Below are positions 752 to 40,633 of a stretch of 64,000 bases of DNA, piece after piece; position 1 is the first letter of the stretch; the number at the start of each line of letters is the position of its first letter. The translations under genes were made by a program, and so were the position numbers. The notes under the pieces are model-generated. The model worked only from the letters and a program-made list of their open reading frames with translations, was not told the origin of the DNA and searched no databases. The DNA lies in IMG/VR virus record IMGVR_UViG_3300044680_000280, positions 248,001-312,000 of that record, one strand, 5' to 3'.

Positions 752-2315
752 TCATTGCCATGTTGCGTTTGATCTCCGCAATCTTGTGTTTGGCAAAAAC
801 TCTCTTCGTTGCCAACTTGTGAAATTTGGGGTCTCGCTCGATTCCGATGAACTGACGGTTCTCTTCTGTAGCCGCCAGGCACGTCGTACCCGACCCGCAG
901 TAAGGATCGAGAACGACTCCTCCGACCGGCGTGACCAACTTGACGAGGTATTTCATCAGAGAAATAGGTTTTACGGTTGGGTGAAAGTTGGCTTCCTTAG
1001 GCACGTAATCGAGGTGCTCCAAGTACTTCTCTGGGATGTACTGAACGACCCACTCTTCGACCGCGCGCCCTGACTCCAAGGAGAAAGACGTGTCGAGACT
1101 GTCGTCACCCGGATTGAGGGCCAACATATTTCCTAGGGTCGCCTCCTCGATCTCAAAAAGGAGCTCTTCCGAGACGTCTTCTTTGACAATGTGCTCCTTG
1201 AGCTTGCTCTTCGGGAGACCCTCATTGCGTTCCTCCCTTGACGCTTTCGCCGCATAGAAGAACGGGGCCGCCGGCATAAACTGAACGAAGAAGCGAGCCA
1301 TACCGCCCGCATCTTTCGCAGAAGCACTTTGGGCATTCATTGTGGCGACCGGGCAACCCTCGACACATGCATAAAGGGCGACTTCTTCCTTGCCCTCGGC
1401 ATCGCCTGTCTTCATGCTCGTGTACGCATGACCCGCCCCGTGACCGAAGGGCTTCATGCCGTCATCGAATCGATTGATGATCGGGGCATCCACCTTCGCC
1501 GTCCCCGTCTGAGTGCATCCCTCCGCATGGGTGAGAACCGCGTTTGCTGGCCAACGGCCGCCCTCCTTGACGTCGTTGGCGCCCGAAAGATCGCTACTGT
1601 TCTTCCAGGAGTTGCCGAGAGACCCACCCTTTGCCTTGAGGGCGGAGACCATAGCCCTGTGCTGCTCGAGGTCTTTGGCGTTCGCGTGCTTCACCCGCGT
1701 CCCGTCGATGTTGATTCCACCCGTTCCCGTCTGGACAATCTGATCAGCAAGGGTGCCGCTGAACGGCTTCCGCATGCAAAGGATGGGCTCCCAAGCCGGT
1801 TTCAGCGCCGTACCGTACCCCTCAAACTGGTCCGCCCTGGCGAGCAGTTTGGCCTTCAGCTCCGGGTCTTCCGCAACCGCGGCCCGCTTGCGTAACTCCT
1901 TGGAAATGTTCATGGACTTGGGAAAGCCTTGCGCTTGAATCCATTGTAGGCAAGGGGATCCAAAGTACGACGAAATGGTGTCTCGGTTGTCGAACCCTGC
2001 GGCTCGGAGTCCGATGCTCATGACGTCCCAGGTTCGAGTCGAAGCGAAGCTCAAAACGTAGCCCCCTGGCTTGAGCACGCGGAGGCACTCACGCCAAACG
2101 GGCACGGAGGGGATGTCCCACTTGTAAGACATGAAGTCCCCGCCCATGTCGAGCGTCGACCCGCGAAGGTACGCTTCAATGTCCTCCTTCGTTGGCTCCC
2201 TCGTGCCCATCCCGTAGGGGGGATCCGTCACAATACTGTCGACGGAGTTGTCAGGAAGGGTCTTCAGAACTTCGAGGCAGTCACCATTAAGTATGACATT
2301 GGTGGACTCGGACAT
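687..2315 (-). CDS. DNA N4/N6 methyltransferase (beta class)
   Basis: Motif IV DPPY near N-terminus; HPTVKP and motif I DPYCGSG near C-terminus. Confidence 0.92.
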   Translation of the reverse strand: MSESTNVILNGDCLEVLKTLPDNSVDSIVTDPPYGMGTREPTKEDIEAYLRGSTLDMGGDFMSYKWDIPSVPVWRECLRVLKPGGYVLSFASTRTWDVMSIGLRAAGFDNRDTISSYFGSPCLQWIQAQGFPKSMNISKELRKRAAVAEDPELKAKLLARADQFEGYGTALKPAWEPILCMRKPFSGTLADQIVQTGTGGINIDGTRVKHANAKDLEQHRAMVSALKAKGGSLGNSWKNSSDLSGANDVKEGGRWPANAVLTHAEGCTQTGTAKVDAPIINRFDDGMKPFGHGAGHAYTSMKTGDAEGKEEVALYACVEGCPVATMNAQSASAKDAGGMARFFVQFMPAAPFFYAAKASREERNEGLPKSKLKEHIVKEDVSEELLFEIEEATLGNMLALNPGDDSLDTSFSLESGRAVEEWVVQYIPEKYLEHLDYVPKEANFHPTVKPISLMKYLVKLVTPVGGVVLDPYCGSGTTCLAATEENRQFIGIERDPKFHKLATKRVFAKHKIAEIKRNMAMTIEEDFEVFEPVETSAPGSAF

Positions 2316-2325
2316 ACCGAATCCA

Positions 2326-3159
2326 CTACACCGTCATCGTGCGCTCCTCGTGAACGAATTTCATGAGCACCGTCTTGATCTTGGGTTCGTAGATGGCTTT
2401 CCACGACTTGTAGGGCGCCTTGAGACCCTCCGCCTTGAGGTGGGGCAGCATGACGTCTTCCGTCTGCGCATGAGCCTTGAATCCGAGAATCTCAGCCGGA
2501 GTGTACCCCTCCATGAGGAGGTCGAGGTACAGGGGAGCGTCCGGATGCACGTGTTGCAGTGCCTGTCGGACCTTCGGAAGCACACTGGTCGGTAGATTGT
2601 GGTAGAAGTTTGCTTCGGACTCTGGGTCCCCCATCTGCATCGTGGGGTTTCCCTCCTCGTCGGTGTTGTCGATGGACGGACCGAAGTCATACTTCTTGCG
2701 CTTCGTCTTCTGAATGTCCGAGAGGACAACGTAGTTCAAGCTCTTCAAGAGGTACCTGAACACCTCTCCCAGCTTCGCCCCCTCCCTCAGCTCTTTCCAC
2801 CCACCTTCGACCACGAAGGCGAATAGCCAATTCGAGATAGCGACGTCGACTAACTGCTCGGAGTGGTATTTGGCGAGCAGACTCTTTCGGAGGTCCGCAG
2901 CAAAACCCCGAAGGTAATCCGCAGGAAGGAGTTTCGTCGGGTCCTTGTGCTGATCCACCGGAAATTCAAGTGCCGGCTTCCCGTGGATGTCGGGCAAGTC
3001 CTGAATCTTCTTGCGGATAAAAATGACCCCTAAAGATCGGCCGAGAGCCTGGAGTTCCACTCCTGAGAGGGACGCGATTACGTAAGCCAGTCGCATCCCG
3101 AGCGGGAGCGATGCAAAGATAGCTCGGGTTACACGTACCCCCCGACTTCGTACTTCCAT
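2326..3159 (-). CDS. divergent sigma-factor-like protein
   Basis: Region-2-like VFRYLLKSLNYVVLSDIQKTKRK; region-4-like LYLDLLMEGYTPAEI; adjacent to a second sigma-like gene. Confidence 0.45.
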   Translation of the reverse strand: MEVRSRGVRVTRAIFASLPLGMRLAYVIASLSGVELQALGRSLGVIFIRKKIQDLPDIHGKPALEFPVDQHKDPTKLLPADYLRGFAADLRKSLLAKYHSEQLVDVAISNWLFAFVVEGGWKELREGAKLGEVFRYLLKSLNYVVLSDIQKTKRKKYDFGPSIDNTDEEGNPTMQMGDPESEANFYHNLPTSVLPKVRQALQHVHPDAPLYLDLLMEGYTPAEILGFKAHAQTEDVMLPHLKAEGLKAPYKSWKAIYEPKIKTVLMKFVHEERTMTV

Positions 3160-3194: not shown

Positions 3195-4322
3195 TCAGGC
3201 CATCGACGAGACGAAGATGTTTTCCTCTGCCAATTCCACATCTTCCTCAATGGTTACCGACTCTTCCATCAGGTCGTCGGTAATGACCTGATCCTCGGCA
3301 CCCGGAGTAGGACGCATTTGAATCTGTCGACGCTCGCGGGCGATGCGGACCCAAGGACGGAGCAGACGTTGAGTGAGGCGGAGGTCATCCGGAGATAGCT
3401 CGAGCTTGCGGACAGCTTCCTCGATGTCGTACCCTTCATTGATGAACTCGAAGATCTCTTCCGCACGGGCGGCGGCGGGACTCTTGGAGATCTCCCGGAG
3501 CAGAAGGCTGAGTTCGGCACGGGCTTCTTGATTGCAGGGGGTCTTATCCGGCAGTCGGCTTTCCCAGGAGAGGGAGTCCTCGACGAGCGGGCGGAGCTCC
3601 TGGAAGGTGTCCCAAACGCGCTCCTTGTTGTGTCGCTCCTCACCTCGGCAAAAGTTCTTGAAGCGATTGTGCACCGTCTTTGAAAGGTAGTTCTGAAAAT
3701 GCCGCCGGCTCTTGGGGACGATCGTGTTGTGGTCGAGCATGACCGCGTCCTCGAAGTACTCCATCTCACCGAGTCGAATGACCGCCGCGAGATTGTAGGT
3801 AGTGTGCTTGGAGTCCGCCTTGCCCTTCAAAGGAAGGACCATCCAAGGCTCCCGGGGAACCGTCGCAACGAACGTCTTGATCGCGTCACGAAACCGTTCC
3901 CACGTGATTCCAAGGGCCTTGTGGGCTTGTTCCCCGGTGATCGTCTCCGGAACGACGACGTTGCTCTGCTCGAGAAATCGTTCGATCGCGCGGGCTTGCT
4001 TCAGTTGGAGAAAGATCTCCTGAACGATGTCACGCGTTCGGCTGTTCGCCGTGACCTTGTTGTAACGACTGATCAGGTGAACGACGAGGGCGCCGTAGAG
4101 GCGAATGAACTGGTCGTACACTTCGCGCTTGTCGAGAGACCGTATGTCGAAAATGGCCTGAATGTAGTCAGCGTAAATCGGGTCGAACGTTTCGGATTCC
4201 ACCTCGGAGCTTCGATGTCGTCGAACCTTTCGAATTCCTGTGATCTCGTCTTGGAAATCCTCCGCATCAGGTGCGTCGGGGGTGAGATTGACGACGTTCG
4301 AGGCTTGGTTTCGAATTGACAT
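3195..4322 (-). CDS. ECF-like sigma factor with insertion in region 2
   Basis: DIVQEIFLQL (2.2-like), FQNYLSKTVHNRFKNFCR (2.3/2.4-like), FEFINEGYDIEEAVRKLELS (region 4-like). Confidence 0.65.
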   Translation of the reverse strand: MSIRNQASNVVNLTPDAPDAEDFQDEITGIRKVRRHRSSEVESETFDPIYADYIQAIFDIRSLDKREVYDQFIRLYGALVVHLISRYNKVTANSRTRDIVQEIFLQLKQARAIERFLEQSNVVVPETITGEQAHKALGITWERFRDAIKTFVATVPREPWMVLPLKGKADSKHTTYNLAAVIRLGEMEYFEDAVMLDHNTIVPKSRRHFQNYLSKTVHNRFKNFCRGEERHNKERVWDTFQELRPLVEDSLSWESRLPDKTPCNQEARAELSLLLREISKSPAAARAEEIFEFINEGYDIEEAVRKLELSPDDLRLTQRLLRPWVRIARERRQIQMRPTPGAEDQVITDDLMEESVTIEEDVELAEENIFVSSMA

Positions 4323-22261: not shown

Positions 22262-22307
22262 GTTCCCATTAATACACCAAGACTGGCGTCTCGGACCACC
22301 AAAATAG

Positions 22308-22418
22308 AGCGGCTGCCTCGAATCGAACGAGGGACCTCCGGACTAACTACTCCGGTGCTCTTCCATCGGCCCTACTTCCCTGGCGCCAGGCTTTCGAACC
22401 TCGCTGAGCTACAGCCGC
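22308..22418 (-). tRNA. atypical tRNA-like gene (45-nt D-loop, 8-nt anticodon loop, no encoded CCA); identity unassignable
   Basis: Acceptor GCGGCTG/CAGCCGC, D stem GCTC/GAGC, anticodon stem CCGGA/TCCGG, variable AGGTC, T arm CCTCG-TTCGATT-CGAGG; GGTGTA 12 nt upstream. Confidence 0.8.
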
Positions 22419-22464
22419 ACTCTTGACAATTACACCGGTTCTCTACTTGTGCCCTCACTCGAGT

Positions 22465-27906: not shown

Positions 27907-28386
27907 ATGACCACGGAAAGATACAAACGGTGCGAGCACTGCGGTGCTCATTACGTACATCAAAGCAGCGGCGGATGCACCCCGAAGTACAATCACGGCA
28001 AATGGTGCCACGACTGTTACAAAGTGGTGCAAGACGCTCTGACTGCCCAACCAAGGCAATACGAGTGCCGATATCAAAGTACTTCGGGACACCCTCGTCT
28101 ATCGTTGGTCACGGTAGACAAGCTCCTCGGATGGGAAATCCTAAACAGAGCAGAACAGAGCCTCCCCATCACCCGTATCTTTTCAGGCCTTTATGACCTG
28201 AAGTCCCAGGACTCTCAGAGCGTTCGAGAAATCCGAGGTCGGGACCAGTACAGTGGGATTTCCTTCAAACTCGCTGTCTGGAAAAACAACTCCGAGAAAC
28301 CGGAGATCGAAGCGGCCATGGAGTACGATATTCAACAGGGGTGTTTCACGGGGCGAGCTTGGAGCACCACCCCATGCATCCCCTAG
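27907..28386 (+). CDS. hypothetical protein with N-terminal zinc ribbon
   Basis: CEHCG...CHDC. Confidence 0.65.
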   Translation: MTTERYKRCEHCGAHYVHQSSGGCTPKYNHGKWCHDCYKVVQDALTAQPRQYECRYQSTSGHPRLSLVTVDKLLGWEILNRAEQSLPITRIFSGLYDLKSQDSQSVREIRGRDQYSGISFKLAVWKNNSEKPEIEAAMEYDIQQGCFTGRAWSTTPCIP

Positions 28387-29058: not shown

Positions 29059-30258
29059 TCAGAACTTTGATGGGTCGCCCCACTGGCTCAGGGCTTCCTT
29101 GAGCTCCTCATGGAGCGAGGCGGGCTCCGTGGTCAGGGCGTCGAGCAAAAGTTTGATGGCGACCCCACCGTGCGCCCCCAAATGCCCGCCCCGCATCTTT
29201 GTGAGGTTCTTGGGTACCTTGTCGTTTGGATCATAGCTGAACACGGCAAGAACGAATCCATTCTTCTTCAGGTTCTCCACGGTTGCCGCAGCAAGTTTCA
29301 CGCCAGCTTTCCCGTCGACACTGACGTAGTAGTCGAAGTACTCGTAGCCGAACATTTGTTTACCTTGGGCGGCCCGCTCCTTCTTGAGCTCTCTCGCCAT
29401 CGCCAGGTTGTACACGGGGGTAACTTCGACGTTGGTCTTTCTACCCGACATAGACGGGTGGTCCTTGGACACGAGCCCGCTCGAGATCAGAATGTCCTTC
29501 AGGCTTGCACCGCCCGAACCCATTTTCACACTCAAGACAGTACTCTCGTTGAGCTCACCCCCTGGCCACGCAATGTACTTTTGAGGCGCCTTGCGGACCG
29601 TGCCCCCGTCCCCGAATTCCATTACCTCTCGGACGAGCTTTGGACACAATTTCGTTAGGTCCGACTTCAGAGGACCCTCGGTAAAATGACCCAGCCAGTC
29701 CGACTCGATGATCACGTTTCCAGACTTGTCGGCGTCAAAAACGGTGTTCGCCCCGCGATGGCGAACACCCTCGGCGATCAACTTGTTTTCAATTCGACCA
29801 AAGACAACCCACATATCCGCGGACCAACCCCGTTCCTTGTAGCTCATCCATTCGGGCTTCGAAATGAAGAGCCACTCAACCCCGCTAGGATGGTGGACCC
29901 CTTCCGCAAAGTTTTTGCCCTTGATCGTGTCGACAACAGGCGGGGGCTCCCTCTTCGGACGATCGGGCGTTGGGGAACGTTCGGGACGCCACTCGCTCCG
30001 AGGAGCTGATGCCCCCGCTTTGAGGAGGTAGTCCTTTGCCATGTTGATCGCCACAAGAGCCTCGTGGCTACCGCCCTTGTCGGGATGGTTTTCCAGGGCT
30101 TTTTGGCGCCAGTTCTTGGTGATTTCCTCGGCAGAGGGCGTGTCCTTCGGATCGAAACCGAGAAGTTTGAGCGCGCGTTCTCGGGTCATGTCCCCAACAT
30201 ACTGCCACGCCAGCTTCTCCAGGTATCGTTGGGCAACTCGGGACGCAATACGGCTCAT
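29059..30258 (-). CDS. J-domain (DnaJ-like) protein with long uncharacterised C-terminus
   Basis: ALKLLG...EEITKNWRQKALENHPDKGGS...AINMAKDYL; N-terminal ASRVAQRYL. Confidence 0.85.
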   Translation of the reverse strand: MSRIASRVAQRYLEKLAWQYVGDMTRERALKLLGFDPKDTPSAEEITKNWRQKALENHPDKGGSHEALVAINMAKDYLLKAGASAPRSEWRPERSPTPDRPKREPPPVVDTIKGKNFAEGVHHPSGVEWLFISKPEWMSYKERGWSADMWVVFGRIENKLIAEGVRHRGANTVFDADKSGNVIIESDWLGHFTEGPLKSDLTKLCPKLVREVMEFGDGGTVRKAPQKYIAWPGGELNESTVLSVKMGSGGASLKDILISSGLVSKDHPSMSGRKTNVEVTPVYNLAMARELKKERAAQGKQMFGYEYFDYYVSVDGKAGVKLAAATVENLKKNGFVLAVFSYDPNDKVPKNLTKMRGGHLGAHGGVAIKLLLDALTTEPASLHEELKEALSQWGDPSKF

Positions 30259-30331
30259 GGGGGTATCCTAGTAGAGCTTACAAGAAACTTAAAGCTAGGC
30301 AAACCCCCATCCTTGGGTGTATACTGTAAAC

Positions 30332-30445
30332 GGGTCTCGTAATTGACCCACCTGAGCCACAGACCCACAACTGTTCTGAAGACTAACCTTGCAACCAAGC
30401 AAGGCTCCACTCTTTAGACTTGTGGGTCTCTGTCTTTAACGGCTC
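30332..30445 (+). ncRNA. candidate structured small RNA
   Basis: Starts 10 nt after GGTGTA 30316-30321 with no ORF; 5' hairpin plus long interrupted stem. Confidence 0.45.
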
Positions 30446-30462
30446 GGTGTAGTGGGTTCGGT

Positions 30463-30966
30463 ATGTCGTACGAAACTGATCCGAAAGTTCACAGGTGGGA
30501 TCTCCGTTACCTGGAGGCGGCCAAGCACTTTGCTCAGTGGAGCAAAGATCCGAGCACAAAGGTCGGAGCCGTCATTGTTACGAGACAACAGACCTACTCC
30601 GGCGACCTCTTGGATCTGAGAAAGATCGATATGGGCCGGATCGTTTCGGTCGGATACAACGGATTCGCACGGGGCATCAAGGACTCAGATGATCGCCTCA
30701 ACAATCGGGAGCTCAAGTACAAGATGGTTGTTCATGGGGAGCGAAACGCCATGCTCTACGCCCAGCGGGATCTCACCGGTTGCACGCTTTACACATGGCC
30801 TTTCATGCCGTGCGCCCCCTGCGCCGCCATGACGATTCAAACGGGAATCAAGCGGGTCGTGGCACCAAAAAACGACAATCCTCGTTGGGTGGAGGACTTC
30901 CAAATCACACGAACGATGTTCAGGGAAGCTATGGTAGAGCTGGTCGAAAAGGAGATTGAACTATGA
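30463..30966 (+). CDS. dCMP deaminase
   Basis: SKDPSTKVGAVI, GYNG, VVHGERNA, PCAPCA. Confidence 0.93.
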   Translation: MSYETDPKVHRWDLRYLEAAKHFAQWSKDPSTKVGAVIVTRQQTYSGDLLDLRKIDMGRIVSVGYNGFARGIKDSDDRLNNRELKYKMVVHGERNAMLYAQRDLTGCTLYTWPFMPCAPCAAMTIQTGIKRVVAPKNDNPRWVEDFQITRTMFREAMVELVEKEIEL

Positions 30967-31265
30967 TGATTTCCCGCGTTACTCTCACCCTCGAAGTCCA
31001 GTGTACGGACGGAACGACTTTCAAGTCCCCCATCTCCGTCTCTCCGTACTTATACGATGTTGTAGACTCGGAGATTCTCGCAGAATTAGGCGCGGAGCCC
31101 GAGAAATCCACTCCCGATGAGAAACTGTTCGCCATCTTAGTCAACAAGATCCGACGAAACGAAGGGTTTGTCGTGTATGAGGCTCCAACCGAGAATCGAG
31201 ATATCATCGATTGGCTGTCCACTCACATTCTCTCGATGCTTCGACTGAAGTCAAAGGACAAGTAG
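30963..31265 (+). CDS. hypothetical protein
   Basis: Overlapping start/stop with dCMP deaminase. Confidence 0.6.
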   Translation: MMISRVTLTLEVQCTDGTTFKSPISVSPYLYDVVDSEILAELGAEPEKSTPDEKLFAILVNKIRRNEGFVVYEAPTENRDIIDWLSTHILSMLRLKSKDK

Positions 31266-32129: not shown

Positions 32130-32173
32130 ACTAAACTAGTACACCGAATCAGTGTACCGGGAGACAAGAATCC

Positions 32174-39760: not shown

Positions 39761-39925
39761 AAGATTTTTGACCTAATTCTCCGGTTCGACCCGCGCGGGT
39801 CACCCGGGAGGGTCAAAGACGGGGAAAGCAGCCCGCACAACGCAGTGAATTAAAAAGTAGCTGCTAGCTTGACGCCTCGGAGAGACGAGGAGGCCTAACC
39901 TCTAATCACCCCACAATGGGGGACA

Positions 39926-40633
39926 ATGCCCGTCGAAACCTACACTGTCTTGTCGACCTTCACGATCTCCCCTCTCCCTGGAGAAACTAGGGAGAGGGTC
40001 TTCACGGAAGGCGGTACCCTATCTTACGATAGGACCATAATCTCGCGGTACACCGAACAACTTGATCAGGCCCTCTATAACGGGTGGATCGTCCGACTCG
40101 TCCCTCTTGAACAGGACGACGGAAATGACGGAGACGATGGGGACGACGGAGACATTCGTCGGTGGAGCTCCGATCCTCAAACCCAAGAAAGAATCGCTAT
40201 ACGAGATTGGAATCGTCGCCGCGACCGTACGACAATTCTAGGTCCGGATGAGCCTCGATCTCCCTACATCAGTGCGATTGATTATTCGTACTCTTCGACG
40301 AGTAACGAGATTCTAGTACCGCTCCCAGAAACCCACAGCCTCGTGATGGATGGCGATCACCTCGTCGGACGGGCTCAGCAAGAATCCGATGAAAGCGAAA
40401 GCGACGATAGTTCGATTCCCATCGAATCCCCTCCTATCGAAGTTGCCGTGGTTCACATTTCCAAGAAGTACTTGGAACGTTGGGAAGGACTGCACGGGAA
40501 CACCCTTCGGGCCGAGCTCACCGCCGCGGTCACCAAATTCATGACTTTGGAAACGGACGACGAAGCGGAAACCCTTCCGAAAGAGCCAAAAAAGTCTCAC
40601 TGGGAACATGTGCTGGAAGAGGTAGCGGAATGA
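39926..40633 (+). CDS. acidic hypothetical protein with C-terminal WEHVL tag
   Basis: Ends PKKSHWEHVLEEVAE. Confidence 0.7.
   Translation: MPVETYTVLSTFTISPLPGETRERVFTEGGTLSYDRTIISRYTEQLDQALYNGWIVRLVPLEQDDGNDGDDGDDGDIRRWSSDPQTQERIAIRDWNRRRDRTTILGPDEPRSPYISAIDYSYSSTSNEILVPLPETHSLVMDGDHLVGRAQQESDESESDDSSIPIESPPIEVAVVHISKKYLERWEGLHGNTLRAELTAAVTKFMTLETDDEAETLPKEPKKSHWEHVLEEVAE

Follow-up and report, generated by a model that had tools for sequence, protein, structure and literature searches.

An intergenic region of an uncultivated huge phage, located between divergent genes for a J-domain protein and a dCMP deaminase, contains a hairpin element (30332-30445) that appears to be real and under selection, and that most likely acts as a plus-strand RNA. 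The element consists of a small hairpin followed by a long bulged rod (Table 1). Our preferred reading, which we put forward tentatively, is that a transcript reads through into the dCMP deaminase gene and carries the rod at its head as a cis-acting RNA hairpin, which would give rise to a discrete RNA only by processing. We infer its strand, transcription start, read-through and cis function from the nucleotide sequence and its predicted folding.

Genomic context

The window analysed here is a stretch of 64,000 nucleotides, corresponding to bases 248001-312000 of one 406,734-bp IMG/VR virus record (55% G+C). Positions are those of the window unless marked G000, which denotes the phage genome. 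The stretch was found in five sequencing runs from peat and soil, all of them DNA, and their contigs are identical to the window over the 4,001 nt compared, with zero variants. Genetic code table 11 was used throughout. The phage record (~407 kb) carries 38 tRNA genes and a tmRNA gene, spanning 165-246 kb. In this cluster (G000:C1:164951-246034, upstream of the window), all genes are on the minus strand at 218-246 kb, except for a plus-strand tRNA-Val gene at ~165 kb; the tmRNA tag is ANDNGIPDLAIAA. Running ARAGORN in intron mode on the cluster gave a few more, doubtful calls.

The element sits in a divergent intergenic region of 204 nt (30259-30462), in which the only small ORFs are implausible overlapping ones. 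The J-domain gene to its left is probably leadered, with a T-rich TTTCTT motif upstream (~30277-30292, minus strand). Genes of this phage that lack GGTGTA have upstream regions enriched in TAGGAG/AAGGAG and in T-rich hexamers. The J-domain gene also shares the longer motif TTTCTT..T..A.CTC (30277-30292, minus strand) with two large genes encoding proteins of 601 and 772 aa (G000 ~72100 and ~75015, minus strand). The motif is located ~25-35 nt before the ATG and is followed by TAGG..ACCCC-ATG; it may represent a third promoter or leader class.

On either side of the locus, genes end in convergent orientation, 3 nt apart at 31265/31269 and overlapping at 28386/28383. No convincing terminator hairpin was found near either pair of ends, and antisense read-through across the neighbouring genes is therefore likely in this region.

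Table 1. Features of the locus and sequence signals discussed in the text. Positions refer to the window, except those marked G000.
Feature	Position	Strand	Details
J-domain (DnaJ-like) protein gene	29059..30258	-	ORF, 399 aa; left flank; Pfam DnaJ, E 2e-4, under the curated cut-off
TAGGAT (AGGA, Shine-Dalgarno-like)	30265..30270	-	7 nt before J-domain ATG; from sequence
Generic sigma-70-like match, TAGGCA-18-TATACT	30296..30325	+	9/12; overlaps GGTGTA and predicts the same start
GGTGTA core, atypical copy	30316..30321	+	Exact core; G at -1 (30315)
Small hairpin, GGGTC / 8-nt loop / GACCC	30332..30349	+	GGGTC 30332-30336; GACCC 30345-30349
Bulged rod, 92 nt	30354..30445	+	32 pairs in 5 helical segments; apical loop AACCAA; 4x6 internal loop; 7-nt bulge near base
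Rod basal helix, GAGCC/GGCTC	30354-30358 / 30441-30445		
Rod helix, ACAGACCCACAA with TTGTGGGTCTCTGT	30360-30371 / 30420-30433		
Rod helix, TCTGAAGA with TCTTTAGA			One G.U
Rod apical hairpin, CCTTGC-AACCAA-GCAAGG	30387-30404		
dCMP deaminase promoter, canonical class I	30446..30462	+	C at -1 is the last rod base; 11-nt spacer GTGGGTTCGGT; ATG at 30463
dCMP deaminase gene	30463..30966	+	167 aa; right flank; Pfam dCMP_cyt_deam_1, E 2e-15
YGGTGTA-N10/11-ATG, examples	26268, 39427, 48172	+	
TTGAAC-N17-TGTACT-N6/7-ATG, examples	23982, 24433, 51715	+	
TCACCCC hairpin copies	39906-39923; G000 48558, 313372, 352030	+	
TCACCCC hairpin copies	G000 386928, 335985, 333002, 324569	-	

Structure of the element

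The description given in the earlier note proved accurate in its coordinates: a GGTGTA (30316-30321) is separated by exactly 10 nt (30322-30331) from the GGGTC of the small hairpin, which starts at 30332 in place of an ATG, and the helices of the rod are nested within each other. The fold is also highly non-random. The plus strand of 30332-30445 (114 nt) folds with a minimum free energy of -45.9 kcal/mol, compared with -25.6 +/- 3.5 kcal/mol for dinucleotide shuffles (z -5.87), and none of 200 shuffles was as good. The structure of minimum free energy contains 37 base pairs (21 GC, 15 AU and 1 GU), and the rod core still forms when folded in contexts of 169-209 nt. For the minus strand, the folding energy is -48.1 kcal/mol with a z-score of -4.96. 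When a 110-nt fold was slid along the whole genome, the element ranked about 40th among distinct structured regions and fell into the top ~1%, both overall and among intergenic positions. Only one interval between same-strand GGTGTA pairs 50-300 nt apart is strongly structured, namely the one that holds the element (z -6.3). By our own estimate, four nested helices in register far exceed a chance 10-bp inverted repeat.

Aligned by eye as DNA, the arms of the rod differ by four indels (of 7, 2, 2 and 1 nt), one replaced block (4 versus 6 nt) and one transition; there are zero isolated mismatches in the helices. On the plus strand the transition (30378/30415) leaves the bases paired as G.U, whereas the minus strand would have C opposite A, a mismatch. 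Because neutral decay of a DNA palindrome should leave mostly scattered substitutions, the arm differences would favour selection for RNA pairing, with a weak preference for the plus strand that rests on the single G.U pair and on z-scores that differ by 0.9. The palindrome at the locus extends over 30342-30462 and has the dCMP deaminase promoter in its 3' arm. Bases 30346-30358 are complementary over 13 nt to the start region of the J-domain gene; this match and the local GACCCAC repeats were dismissed, both being at chance level by our estimate.

Promoter grammar of the phage

GGTGTA is a genuine promoter-type signal in this phage. The window contains 64 copies, against 14.7 expected, and there are 327 copies genome-wide, 135 of which are followed by an ATG-initiated ORF after 9-12 nt, mostly 10-11 nt (class I). 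The base preceding the hexamer in these 135 start-codon-linked sites is C in 99, T in 32 and A in 4 cases, and never G. In related phages it is a pyrimidine at 18 of 19 GGTGTA sites (C 13, T 5, G 1), and contigs with J-domain homologs use the same arrangement, YGGTGTA-N9-11-ATG. A second class, TTGAAC-N17-TGTACT followed by ATG after 6-7 nt, is represented by ~40 sites, mostly at G000 256-406 kb. Given that both geometries hold a fixed distance to the ATG, the mRNAs of both classes would begin at or next to the start codon and thus be leaderless; many other genes have GGAG-type Shine-Dalgarno leaders. Our literature search for a GGTGTA phage promoter returned nothing relevant.

Two non-coding genes likewise have canonical copies with C at -1 in front of them: a tRNA-like gene begins 13 nt after the site at 22436 (minus strand), and the tmRNA gene ~45 nt after its site. 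It was therefore sound reasoning, in this genome, to suspect an RNA behind a GGTGTA that lacks an ATG. The tRNA-like gene (22305-22436 region, minus strand, behind cGGTGTA) is missed by ARAGORN and Rfam as it stands. Its D-loop carries a 33-45-nt insert that contains the hairpin CCTGGCGCCAGG; when the insert is removed in silico, ARAGORN calls a tRNA of 72 nt, whose anticodon loop has 8 nt and whose anticodon, AGTT, has four bases.

The second GGTGTA at the locus, at 30446, belongs to the dCMP deaminase gene, as the earlier note had recognised, and is canonical in its -1 base and in its 11-nt distance to the ATG. The promoter, spacer and first codons of this gene (30446-30467, plus strand) are identical in 21 of 22 positions to those of a DNA methylase gene (2311-2332, minus strand), the common sequence being GGTGTAGTGG[A/G]TTCGGTATGTC. 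A related phage contig (L023) has the similar sequence GGTGTAGTGGTTCCGGTATG at position 285. The methylase and dCMP deaminase promoters may form a co-regulated subclass. Two divergent YGGTGTA pairs elsewhere (G000:C1:351551-351660 and 353326-353435) are near-perfect long palindromes that include the spacers and both ATGs.

A search of the record for a T7-like RNA polymerase, an RNA polymerase beta-prime subunit or a sigma region 2 found none above threshold. The 375-aa protein encoded at 3195-4322 (minus strand) has a weak match to Sigma70 region 2 (E 7e-4, under the cut-off); it is a candidate factor for the recognition of one of the phage's promoter classes.

The GGTGTA at 30316

The earlier note took the GGTGTA at 30316 for an orphan promoter. 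The hexamer is indeed a promoter-type signal and its core is exact here, but the note did not weigh the G at -1, a base that occurs in none of the 135 start-codon-linked sites, where a pyrimidine or, rarely, A is found. There is also no ATG-initiated ORF or recognisable RNA gene at the expected start: positions 30331-30334 contain no start codon, and neither Rfam nor ARAGORN places a gene there. The heptamer GGGTGTA occurs 30 times in the genome, close to its background frequency, and not once before an ATG. Another GGTGTA with G at -1 (G000 386946, minus strand) is closely followed by a leader hairpin motif that recurs in the genome.

If the -1 base is disregarded, the flanks of the 30316 site, scored on features that include A/T near -25 and T at -2, reach 1.7 bits; true sites score 2.7 +/- 3.1 bits and the intergenic null -2.75 +/- 2.8 bits, with 5.9% of the null reaching 1.7. 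Including -1, the log-odds relative to a coding background are ~1.2 bits. We estimate that the flanks favour promoter function by ~3:1 and that the G at -1 opposes it by ~50:1. Taking the prior odds for intergenic orphan GGTGTA sites as ~2:1, these figures make it unlikely that the site works as a class I promoter, and it is probably not a canonical promoter.

Overlapping the GGTGTA is the generic sigma-70-like match TAGGCA-18-TATACT, the sole such match in 29900-30800 (900 nt), where 0.3 are expected in shuffled sequence. It is unlike the phage's own TTGAAC-N17-TGTACT class. No class II promoter (at least 9-10 of 12 positions, 16-18-nt spacer) was found on either strand of 30259-30520; the best matches are 8/12 on the plus strand, inside the structure, and 7/12 on the minus strand, and ~0.8% of random positions reach 8/12 or better. 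On the minus-strand side, neither a class I nor a class II promoter is directed at the element.

Comparison with known RNA elements

Rfam gave zero matches in the whole window at the gathering score. At E<=10 over 30200-30520, we found no 6S RNA, SRP RNA, riboswitch or ribozyme, only noise and a weak minus-strand match to tRNA-Sec, and ARAGORN called no gene at the element.

6S RNA is ~180 nt long, has a large central bubble between long helices and acts as a decoy for RNA polymerase-sigma70, binding the holoenzyme and templating product RNA. The earlier note had compared the rod to this RNA (RF00013), and the element is likewise a largely double-stranded, interrupted rod. The further parallel, that the promoter would be read by the very polymerase that the RNA might bind, is by the note's analogy only. 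There is no covariance match to 6S RNA even at E<=10, the element has 114 nt, and its largest loops are the 4x6-nt internal loop and the 7-nt bulge, with no central bubble. The 6S analogy is not supported and fails on every point that could be tested. SRP RNA, the other family that the note had proposed for comparison, was likewise rejected because it has no Rfam match in the window at gathering or in 30200-30520 at E<=10. Y RNA/YrlA was discarded as well, there being no Rfam match and no TROVE (Ro60) domain in the 406.7-kb record.

No intrinsic terminator was called in 29900-30800. The tails flanking the rod are devoid of a U-run, being CTTTAAC and GGTGTAG on the plus strand and GTTTACAG on the minus strand. 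The evident terminators of this phage have perfect GC stems and, in most cases, U-rich tails. The rod, an imperfect stem with no U-run on either strand, is unlike these, and a role as standard terminator was rejected. The discrete RNA of ~110 nt postulated in the earlier note is thus left with no terminator to define its 3' end.

The rod is an imperfect double-stranded helix of more than 20 bp, as an RNase III-type processing hairpin would be: its 32 pairs are spread over 92 nt and interrupted by bulges and loops. A phage-encoded RNase III was not found above threshold in the record. The R0.3-R1.3 RNase III sites of phage T7 are ~50-60 nt long and located inside co-directional polycistronic transcripts. 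Like these hairpins, the rod is long, irregular and intergenic, has loops and bulges and no U-tract, is located directly before a gene and is stable as double-stranded RNA; unlike them, it is longer and lies in a divergent intergenic region, and its cleavage would be hypothetical. A second comparison is with the PeSL elements of T4-type phages, which are cassettes of a promoter and a stem-loop, present in many copies per genome and having an early promoter consensus. As in PeSL, a promoter-like sequence stands tightly beside a stem-loop in an intergenic position, and the surrounding region of this large phage genome is plastic, but the rod is single-copy and its promoter is atypical. Closest to home are the phage's own tRNA-like gene (22305-22420, minus strand) and tmRNA, where a GGTGTA is also shortly followed by a structured RNA and not by an ATG. 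Both of these have C at -1 and are of recognisable types, whereas the rod has G at -1 and matches no family. A replication origin was also considered and rejected, the cumulative GC-skew minimum being at G000 ~295-300 kb and not at 278 kb.

Copies and relatives

The rod is present once in the genome: blastn-short found no further copy, and a covariance model built from the element (R1) found only itself. Over 34 fetched loci, R1 produced no match, save for one noise hit with E=3. No relatives of the J-domain gene were found in IMG/VR. A word search yielded nine J-domain homologs of 29-52% identity, those in related phage contigs having 36-52%. We read seven of their contexts (L023-L027 and L040-L042) and saw no comparable hairpin upstream; the upstream regions range from an overlap with the neighbouring gene to ~170 nt. 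Homologs of the dCMP deaminase number in the thousands, all with at most 65% identity, and none is in a syntenic relative.

When IMG/VR was scanned for the inverted 9-mers of the rod as a pattern, 12 unrelated hits came up, about the number expected by chance according to our estimate. Three IMG/VR contigs unrelated to this phage (L028, L035 and L037) surfaced only via a 9-mer they have in common with the rod. They contain direct and inverted arrays of GACCCACAA / TGTCCACA around an AT-richer core, and these arrays look like iteron or DnaA-box-type origins.

A further repeated hairpin of this phage has the motif TCACCCC-(TCAAT/TCAGT)-GGGGA, usually with AA before it, and is present in eight copies, mostly in 5' leaders or intergenic regions (Table 1). 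The gene at 39926 has the copy at 39906-39923 immediately in front of its ATG. This hairpin is a better candidate than the rod for a conserved regulatory RNA or DNA family.

Interpretation of the element

The reading that we prefer, a plus-strand cis element, would work as follows. Local transcription, if there is any, would use the weak or atypical promoter at 30296-30325 (GGGTGTATACT, sigma-70-like 9/12) and start at ~30330-30334, which would put the small hairpin at the 5' end of the transcript. The polymerase would then read through the rod into the dCMP deaminase gene; since there is no terminator between the two, the primary product would most likely be a read-through transcript. The rod could serve as a double-stranded processing or stability element, or as a partial barrier before the gene's own leaderless promoter, and a discrete RNA of ~100-115 nt would arise only through processing or inefficient termination at the rod. 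For the plus strand speak the better z-score, the only promoter-like signals nearby (7-11 nt before the 5' hairpin) and a predicted transcript that would begin with a hairpin. The last base of the rod is also the -1 base of the dCMP deaminase promoter. Long structured leaders follow GGTGTA elsewhere in the genome, for instance at G000 313244-313493. Against this reading stand the G at -1 of the 30316 site, the generic nature of the sigma-70-like match and the failure of the searches to yield homologs or covariation. Having a leaderless promoter and no Shine-Dalgarno sequence, the dCMP deaminase gene would be poorly translated from a leadered transcript. Its AUG is unsequestered in the fold of the long transcript, and no translational switch is therefore apparent.

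An independent, trans-acting small RNA, as envisaged in the earlier note but stripped of the 6S analogy, seems to us unlikely. It would start at ~30332 from the GGGTGTATACT region and acquire its 3' end at ~30434-30446 by weak termination or processing. A promoter-like sequence at the distance typical of its class and a 5'-terminal hairpin of the kind seen in stable RNAs are what such a transcript would be expected to have, and the canonical GGTGTA sites before the tRNA-like gene and tmRNA provide a precedent, as does the G(-1) site upstream of the leader hairpin at G000 386946. The tail is poor in U in at least one evident terminator between convergent genes (~23251), and CTTTAAC comes after the inner stem of the rod. 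These points have to be set against the G at -1 (0/135), the lack of a called terminator and the fact that the rod abuts the next promoter with zero spacer; no paralog, homolog or Rfam family was found, and no target or partner protein is evident. A more specific version of this idea, which we regard as quite improbable, is a family-less phage RNA of ~105-115 nt whose promoter would be a variant of the phage's own, weakened on purpose. In trans, it might for instance lure away a host nuclease or sensor as a double-stranded decoy, or titrate the factor reading YGGTGTA, and its location immediately upstream of a nucleotide-metabolism gene could perhaps time that gene.

The hairpin might instead need no promoter and act on incoming transcripts of either strand, as a barrier or a double-strand processing site, a reading to which we give only a limited chance. 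Antisense read-through from the convergent neighbouring genes would otherwise enter the J-domain gene or the dCMP deaminase gene in the sense direction, and the hairpin would prevent this. Since the convergent ends on both sides have no convincing terminator hairpins, polymerases from the promoters at 32145 (minus strand) and 26268 (plus strand) could reach the intergenic region, and the rod, about equally stable on both strands, would be the first strong hairpin that they meet in either direction. Yet neither strand has a U-tract, the rod is imperfect where the phage's terminators have perfect stems, no phage RNase III was found, and the read-through itself is only inferred.

That the palindrome functions as DNA is improbable, be it as an operator or insulator between the divergent promoters or as a relic of the phage's inverted promoter duplications. 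The idea is prompted by the two divergent GGTGTA pairs that form long palindromes with spacer and ATG (G000 351551 and 353326), by the inclusion of the dCMP deaminase promoter in the extended palindrome, and by the left arm, where GACCCAC-CT-GAGCC resembles a decayed mirror of AACCCAC-TACACC-GAGCC. Words of the GACCCAC type occur three to four times locally, the sole such cluster in the genome, and inverted GACCCACAA iteron-like arrays exist in unrelated IMG/VR contigs. However, the four indels between the arms would put a DNA palindrome or cruciform out of register but do no harm in an RNA rod, and helices with no isolated mismatches are as expected under selection for pairing. GACCCAC is not enriched genome-wide, the GC-skew minimum is elsewhere, and the 12 IMG/VR pattern hits are non-homologous and near chance level. 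The remaining reading, a tRNA-like gene on the minus strand, possibly tRNA-Sec-like with a UCA anticodon loop, derives from the weak Rfam match at 30328-30412 (21.9 bits, E 0.042, loop CUUCAGA) and from the fact that all but one of the 38 phage tRNA genes are on that strand. The score is far under the gathering threshold of 47, two acceptor pairs and the T arm are unpaired, the alignment is at odds with the rod, which is much more stable, and ARAGORN is negative; we consider this reading effectively refuted.

Significance

The rod is a family-less example of a familiar feature, the structured intergenic hairpin of phages. It is well formed and single-copy, and its value is that of a lead. If it is a functional RNA, it would add to the very small number of regulatory RNA elements identified in uncultivated huge phages, and it would offer a handle on the timing of nucleotide-metabolism genes in such phages, most of whose mRNAs appear to be leaderless. 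The firmer result is the promoter grammar, YGGTGTA-N10/11-ATG together with TTGAAC-N17-TGTACT-N6/7-ATG, which provides an objective score for any claimed orphan promoter of this phage or its relatives; on that scale, the site at 30316 scores as doubtful.
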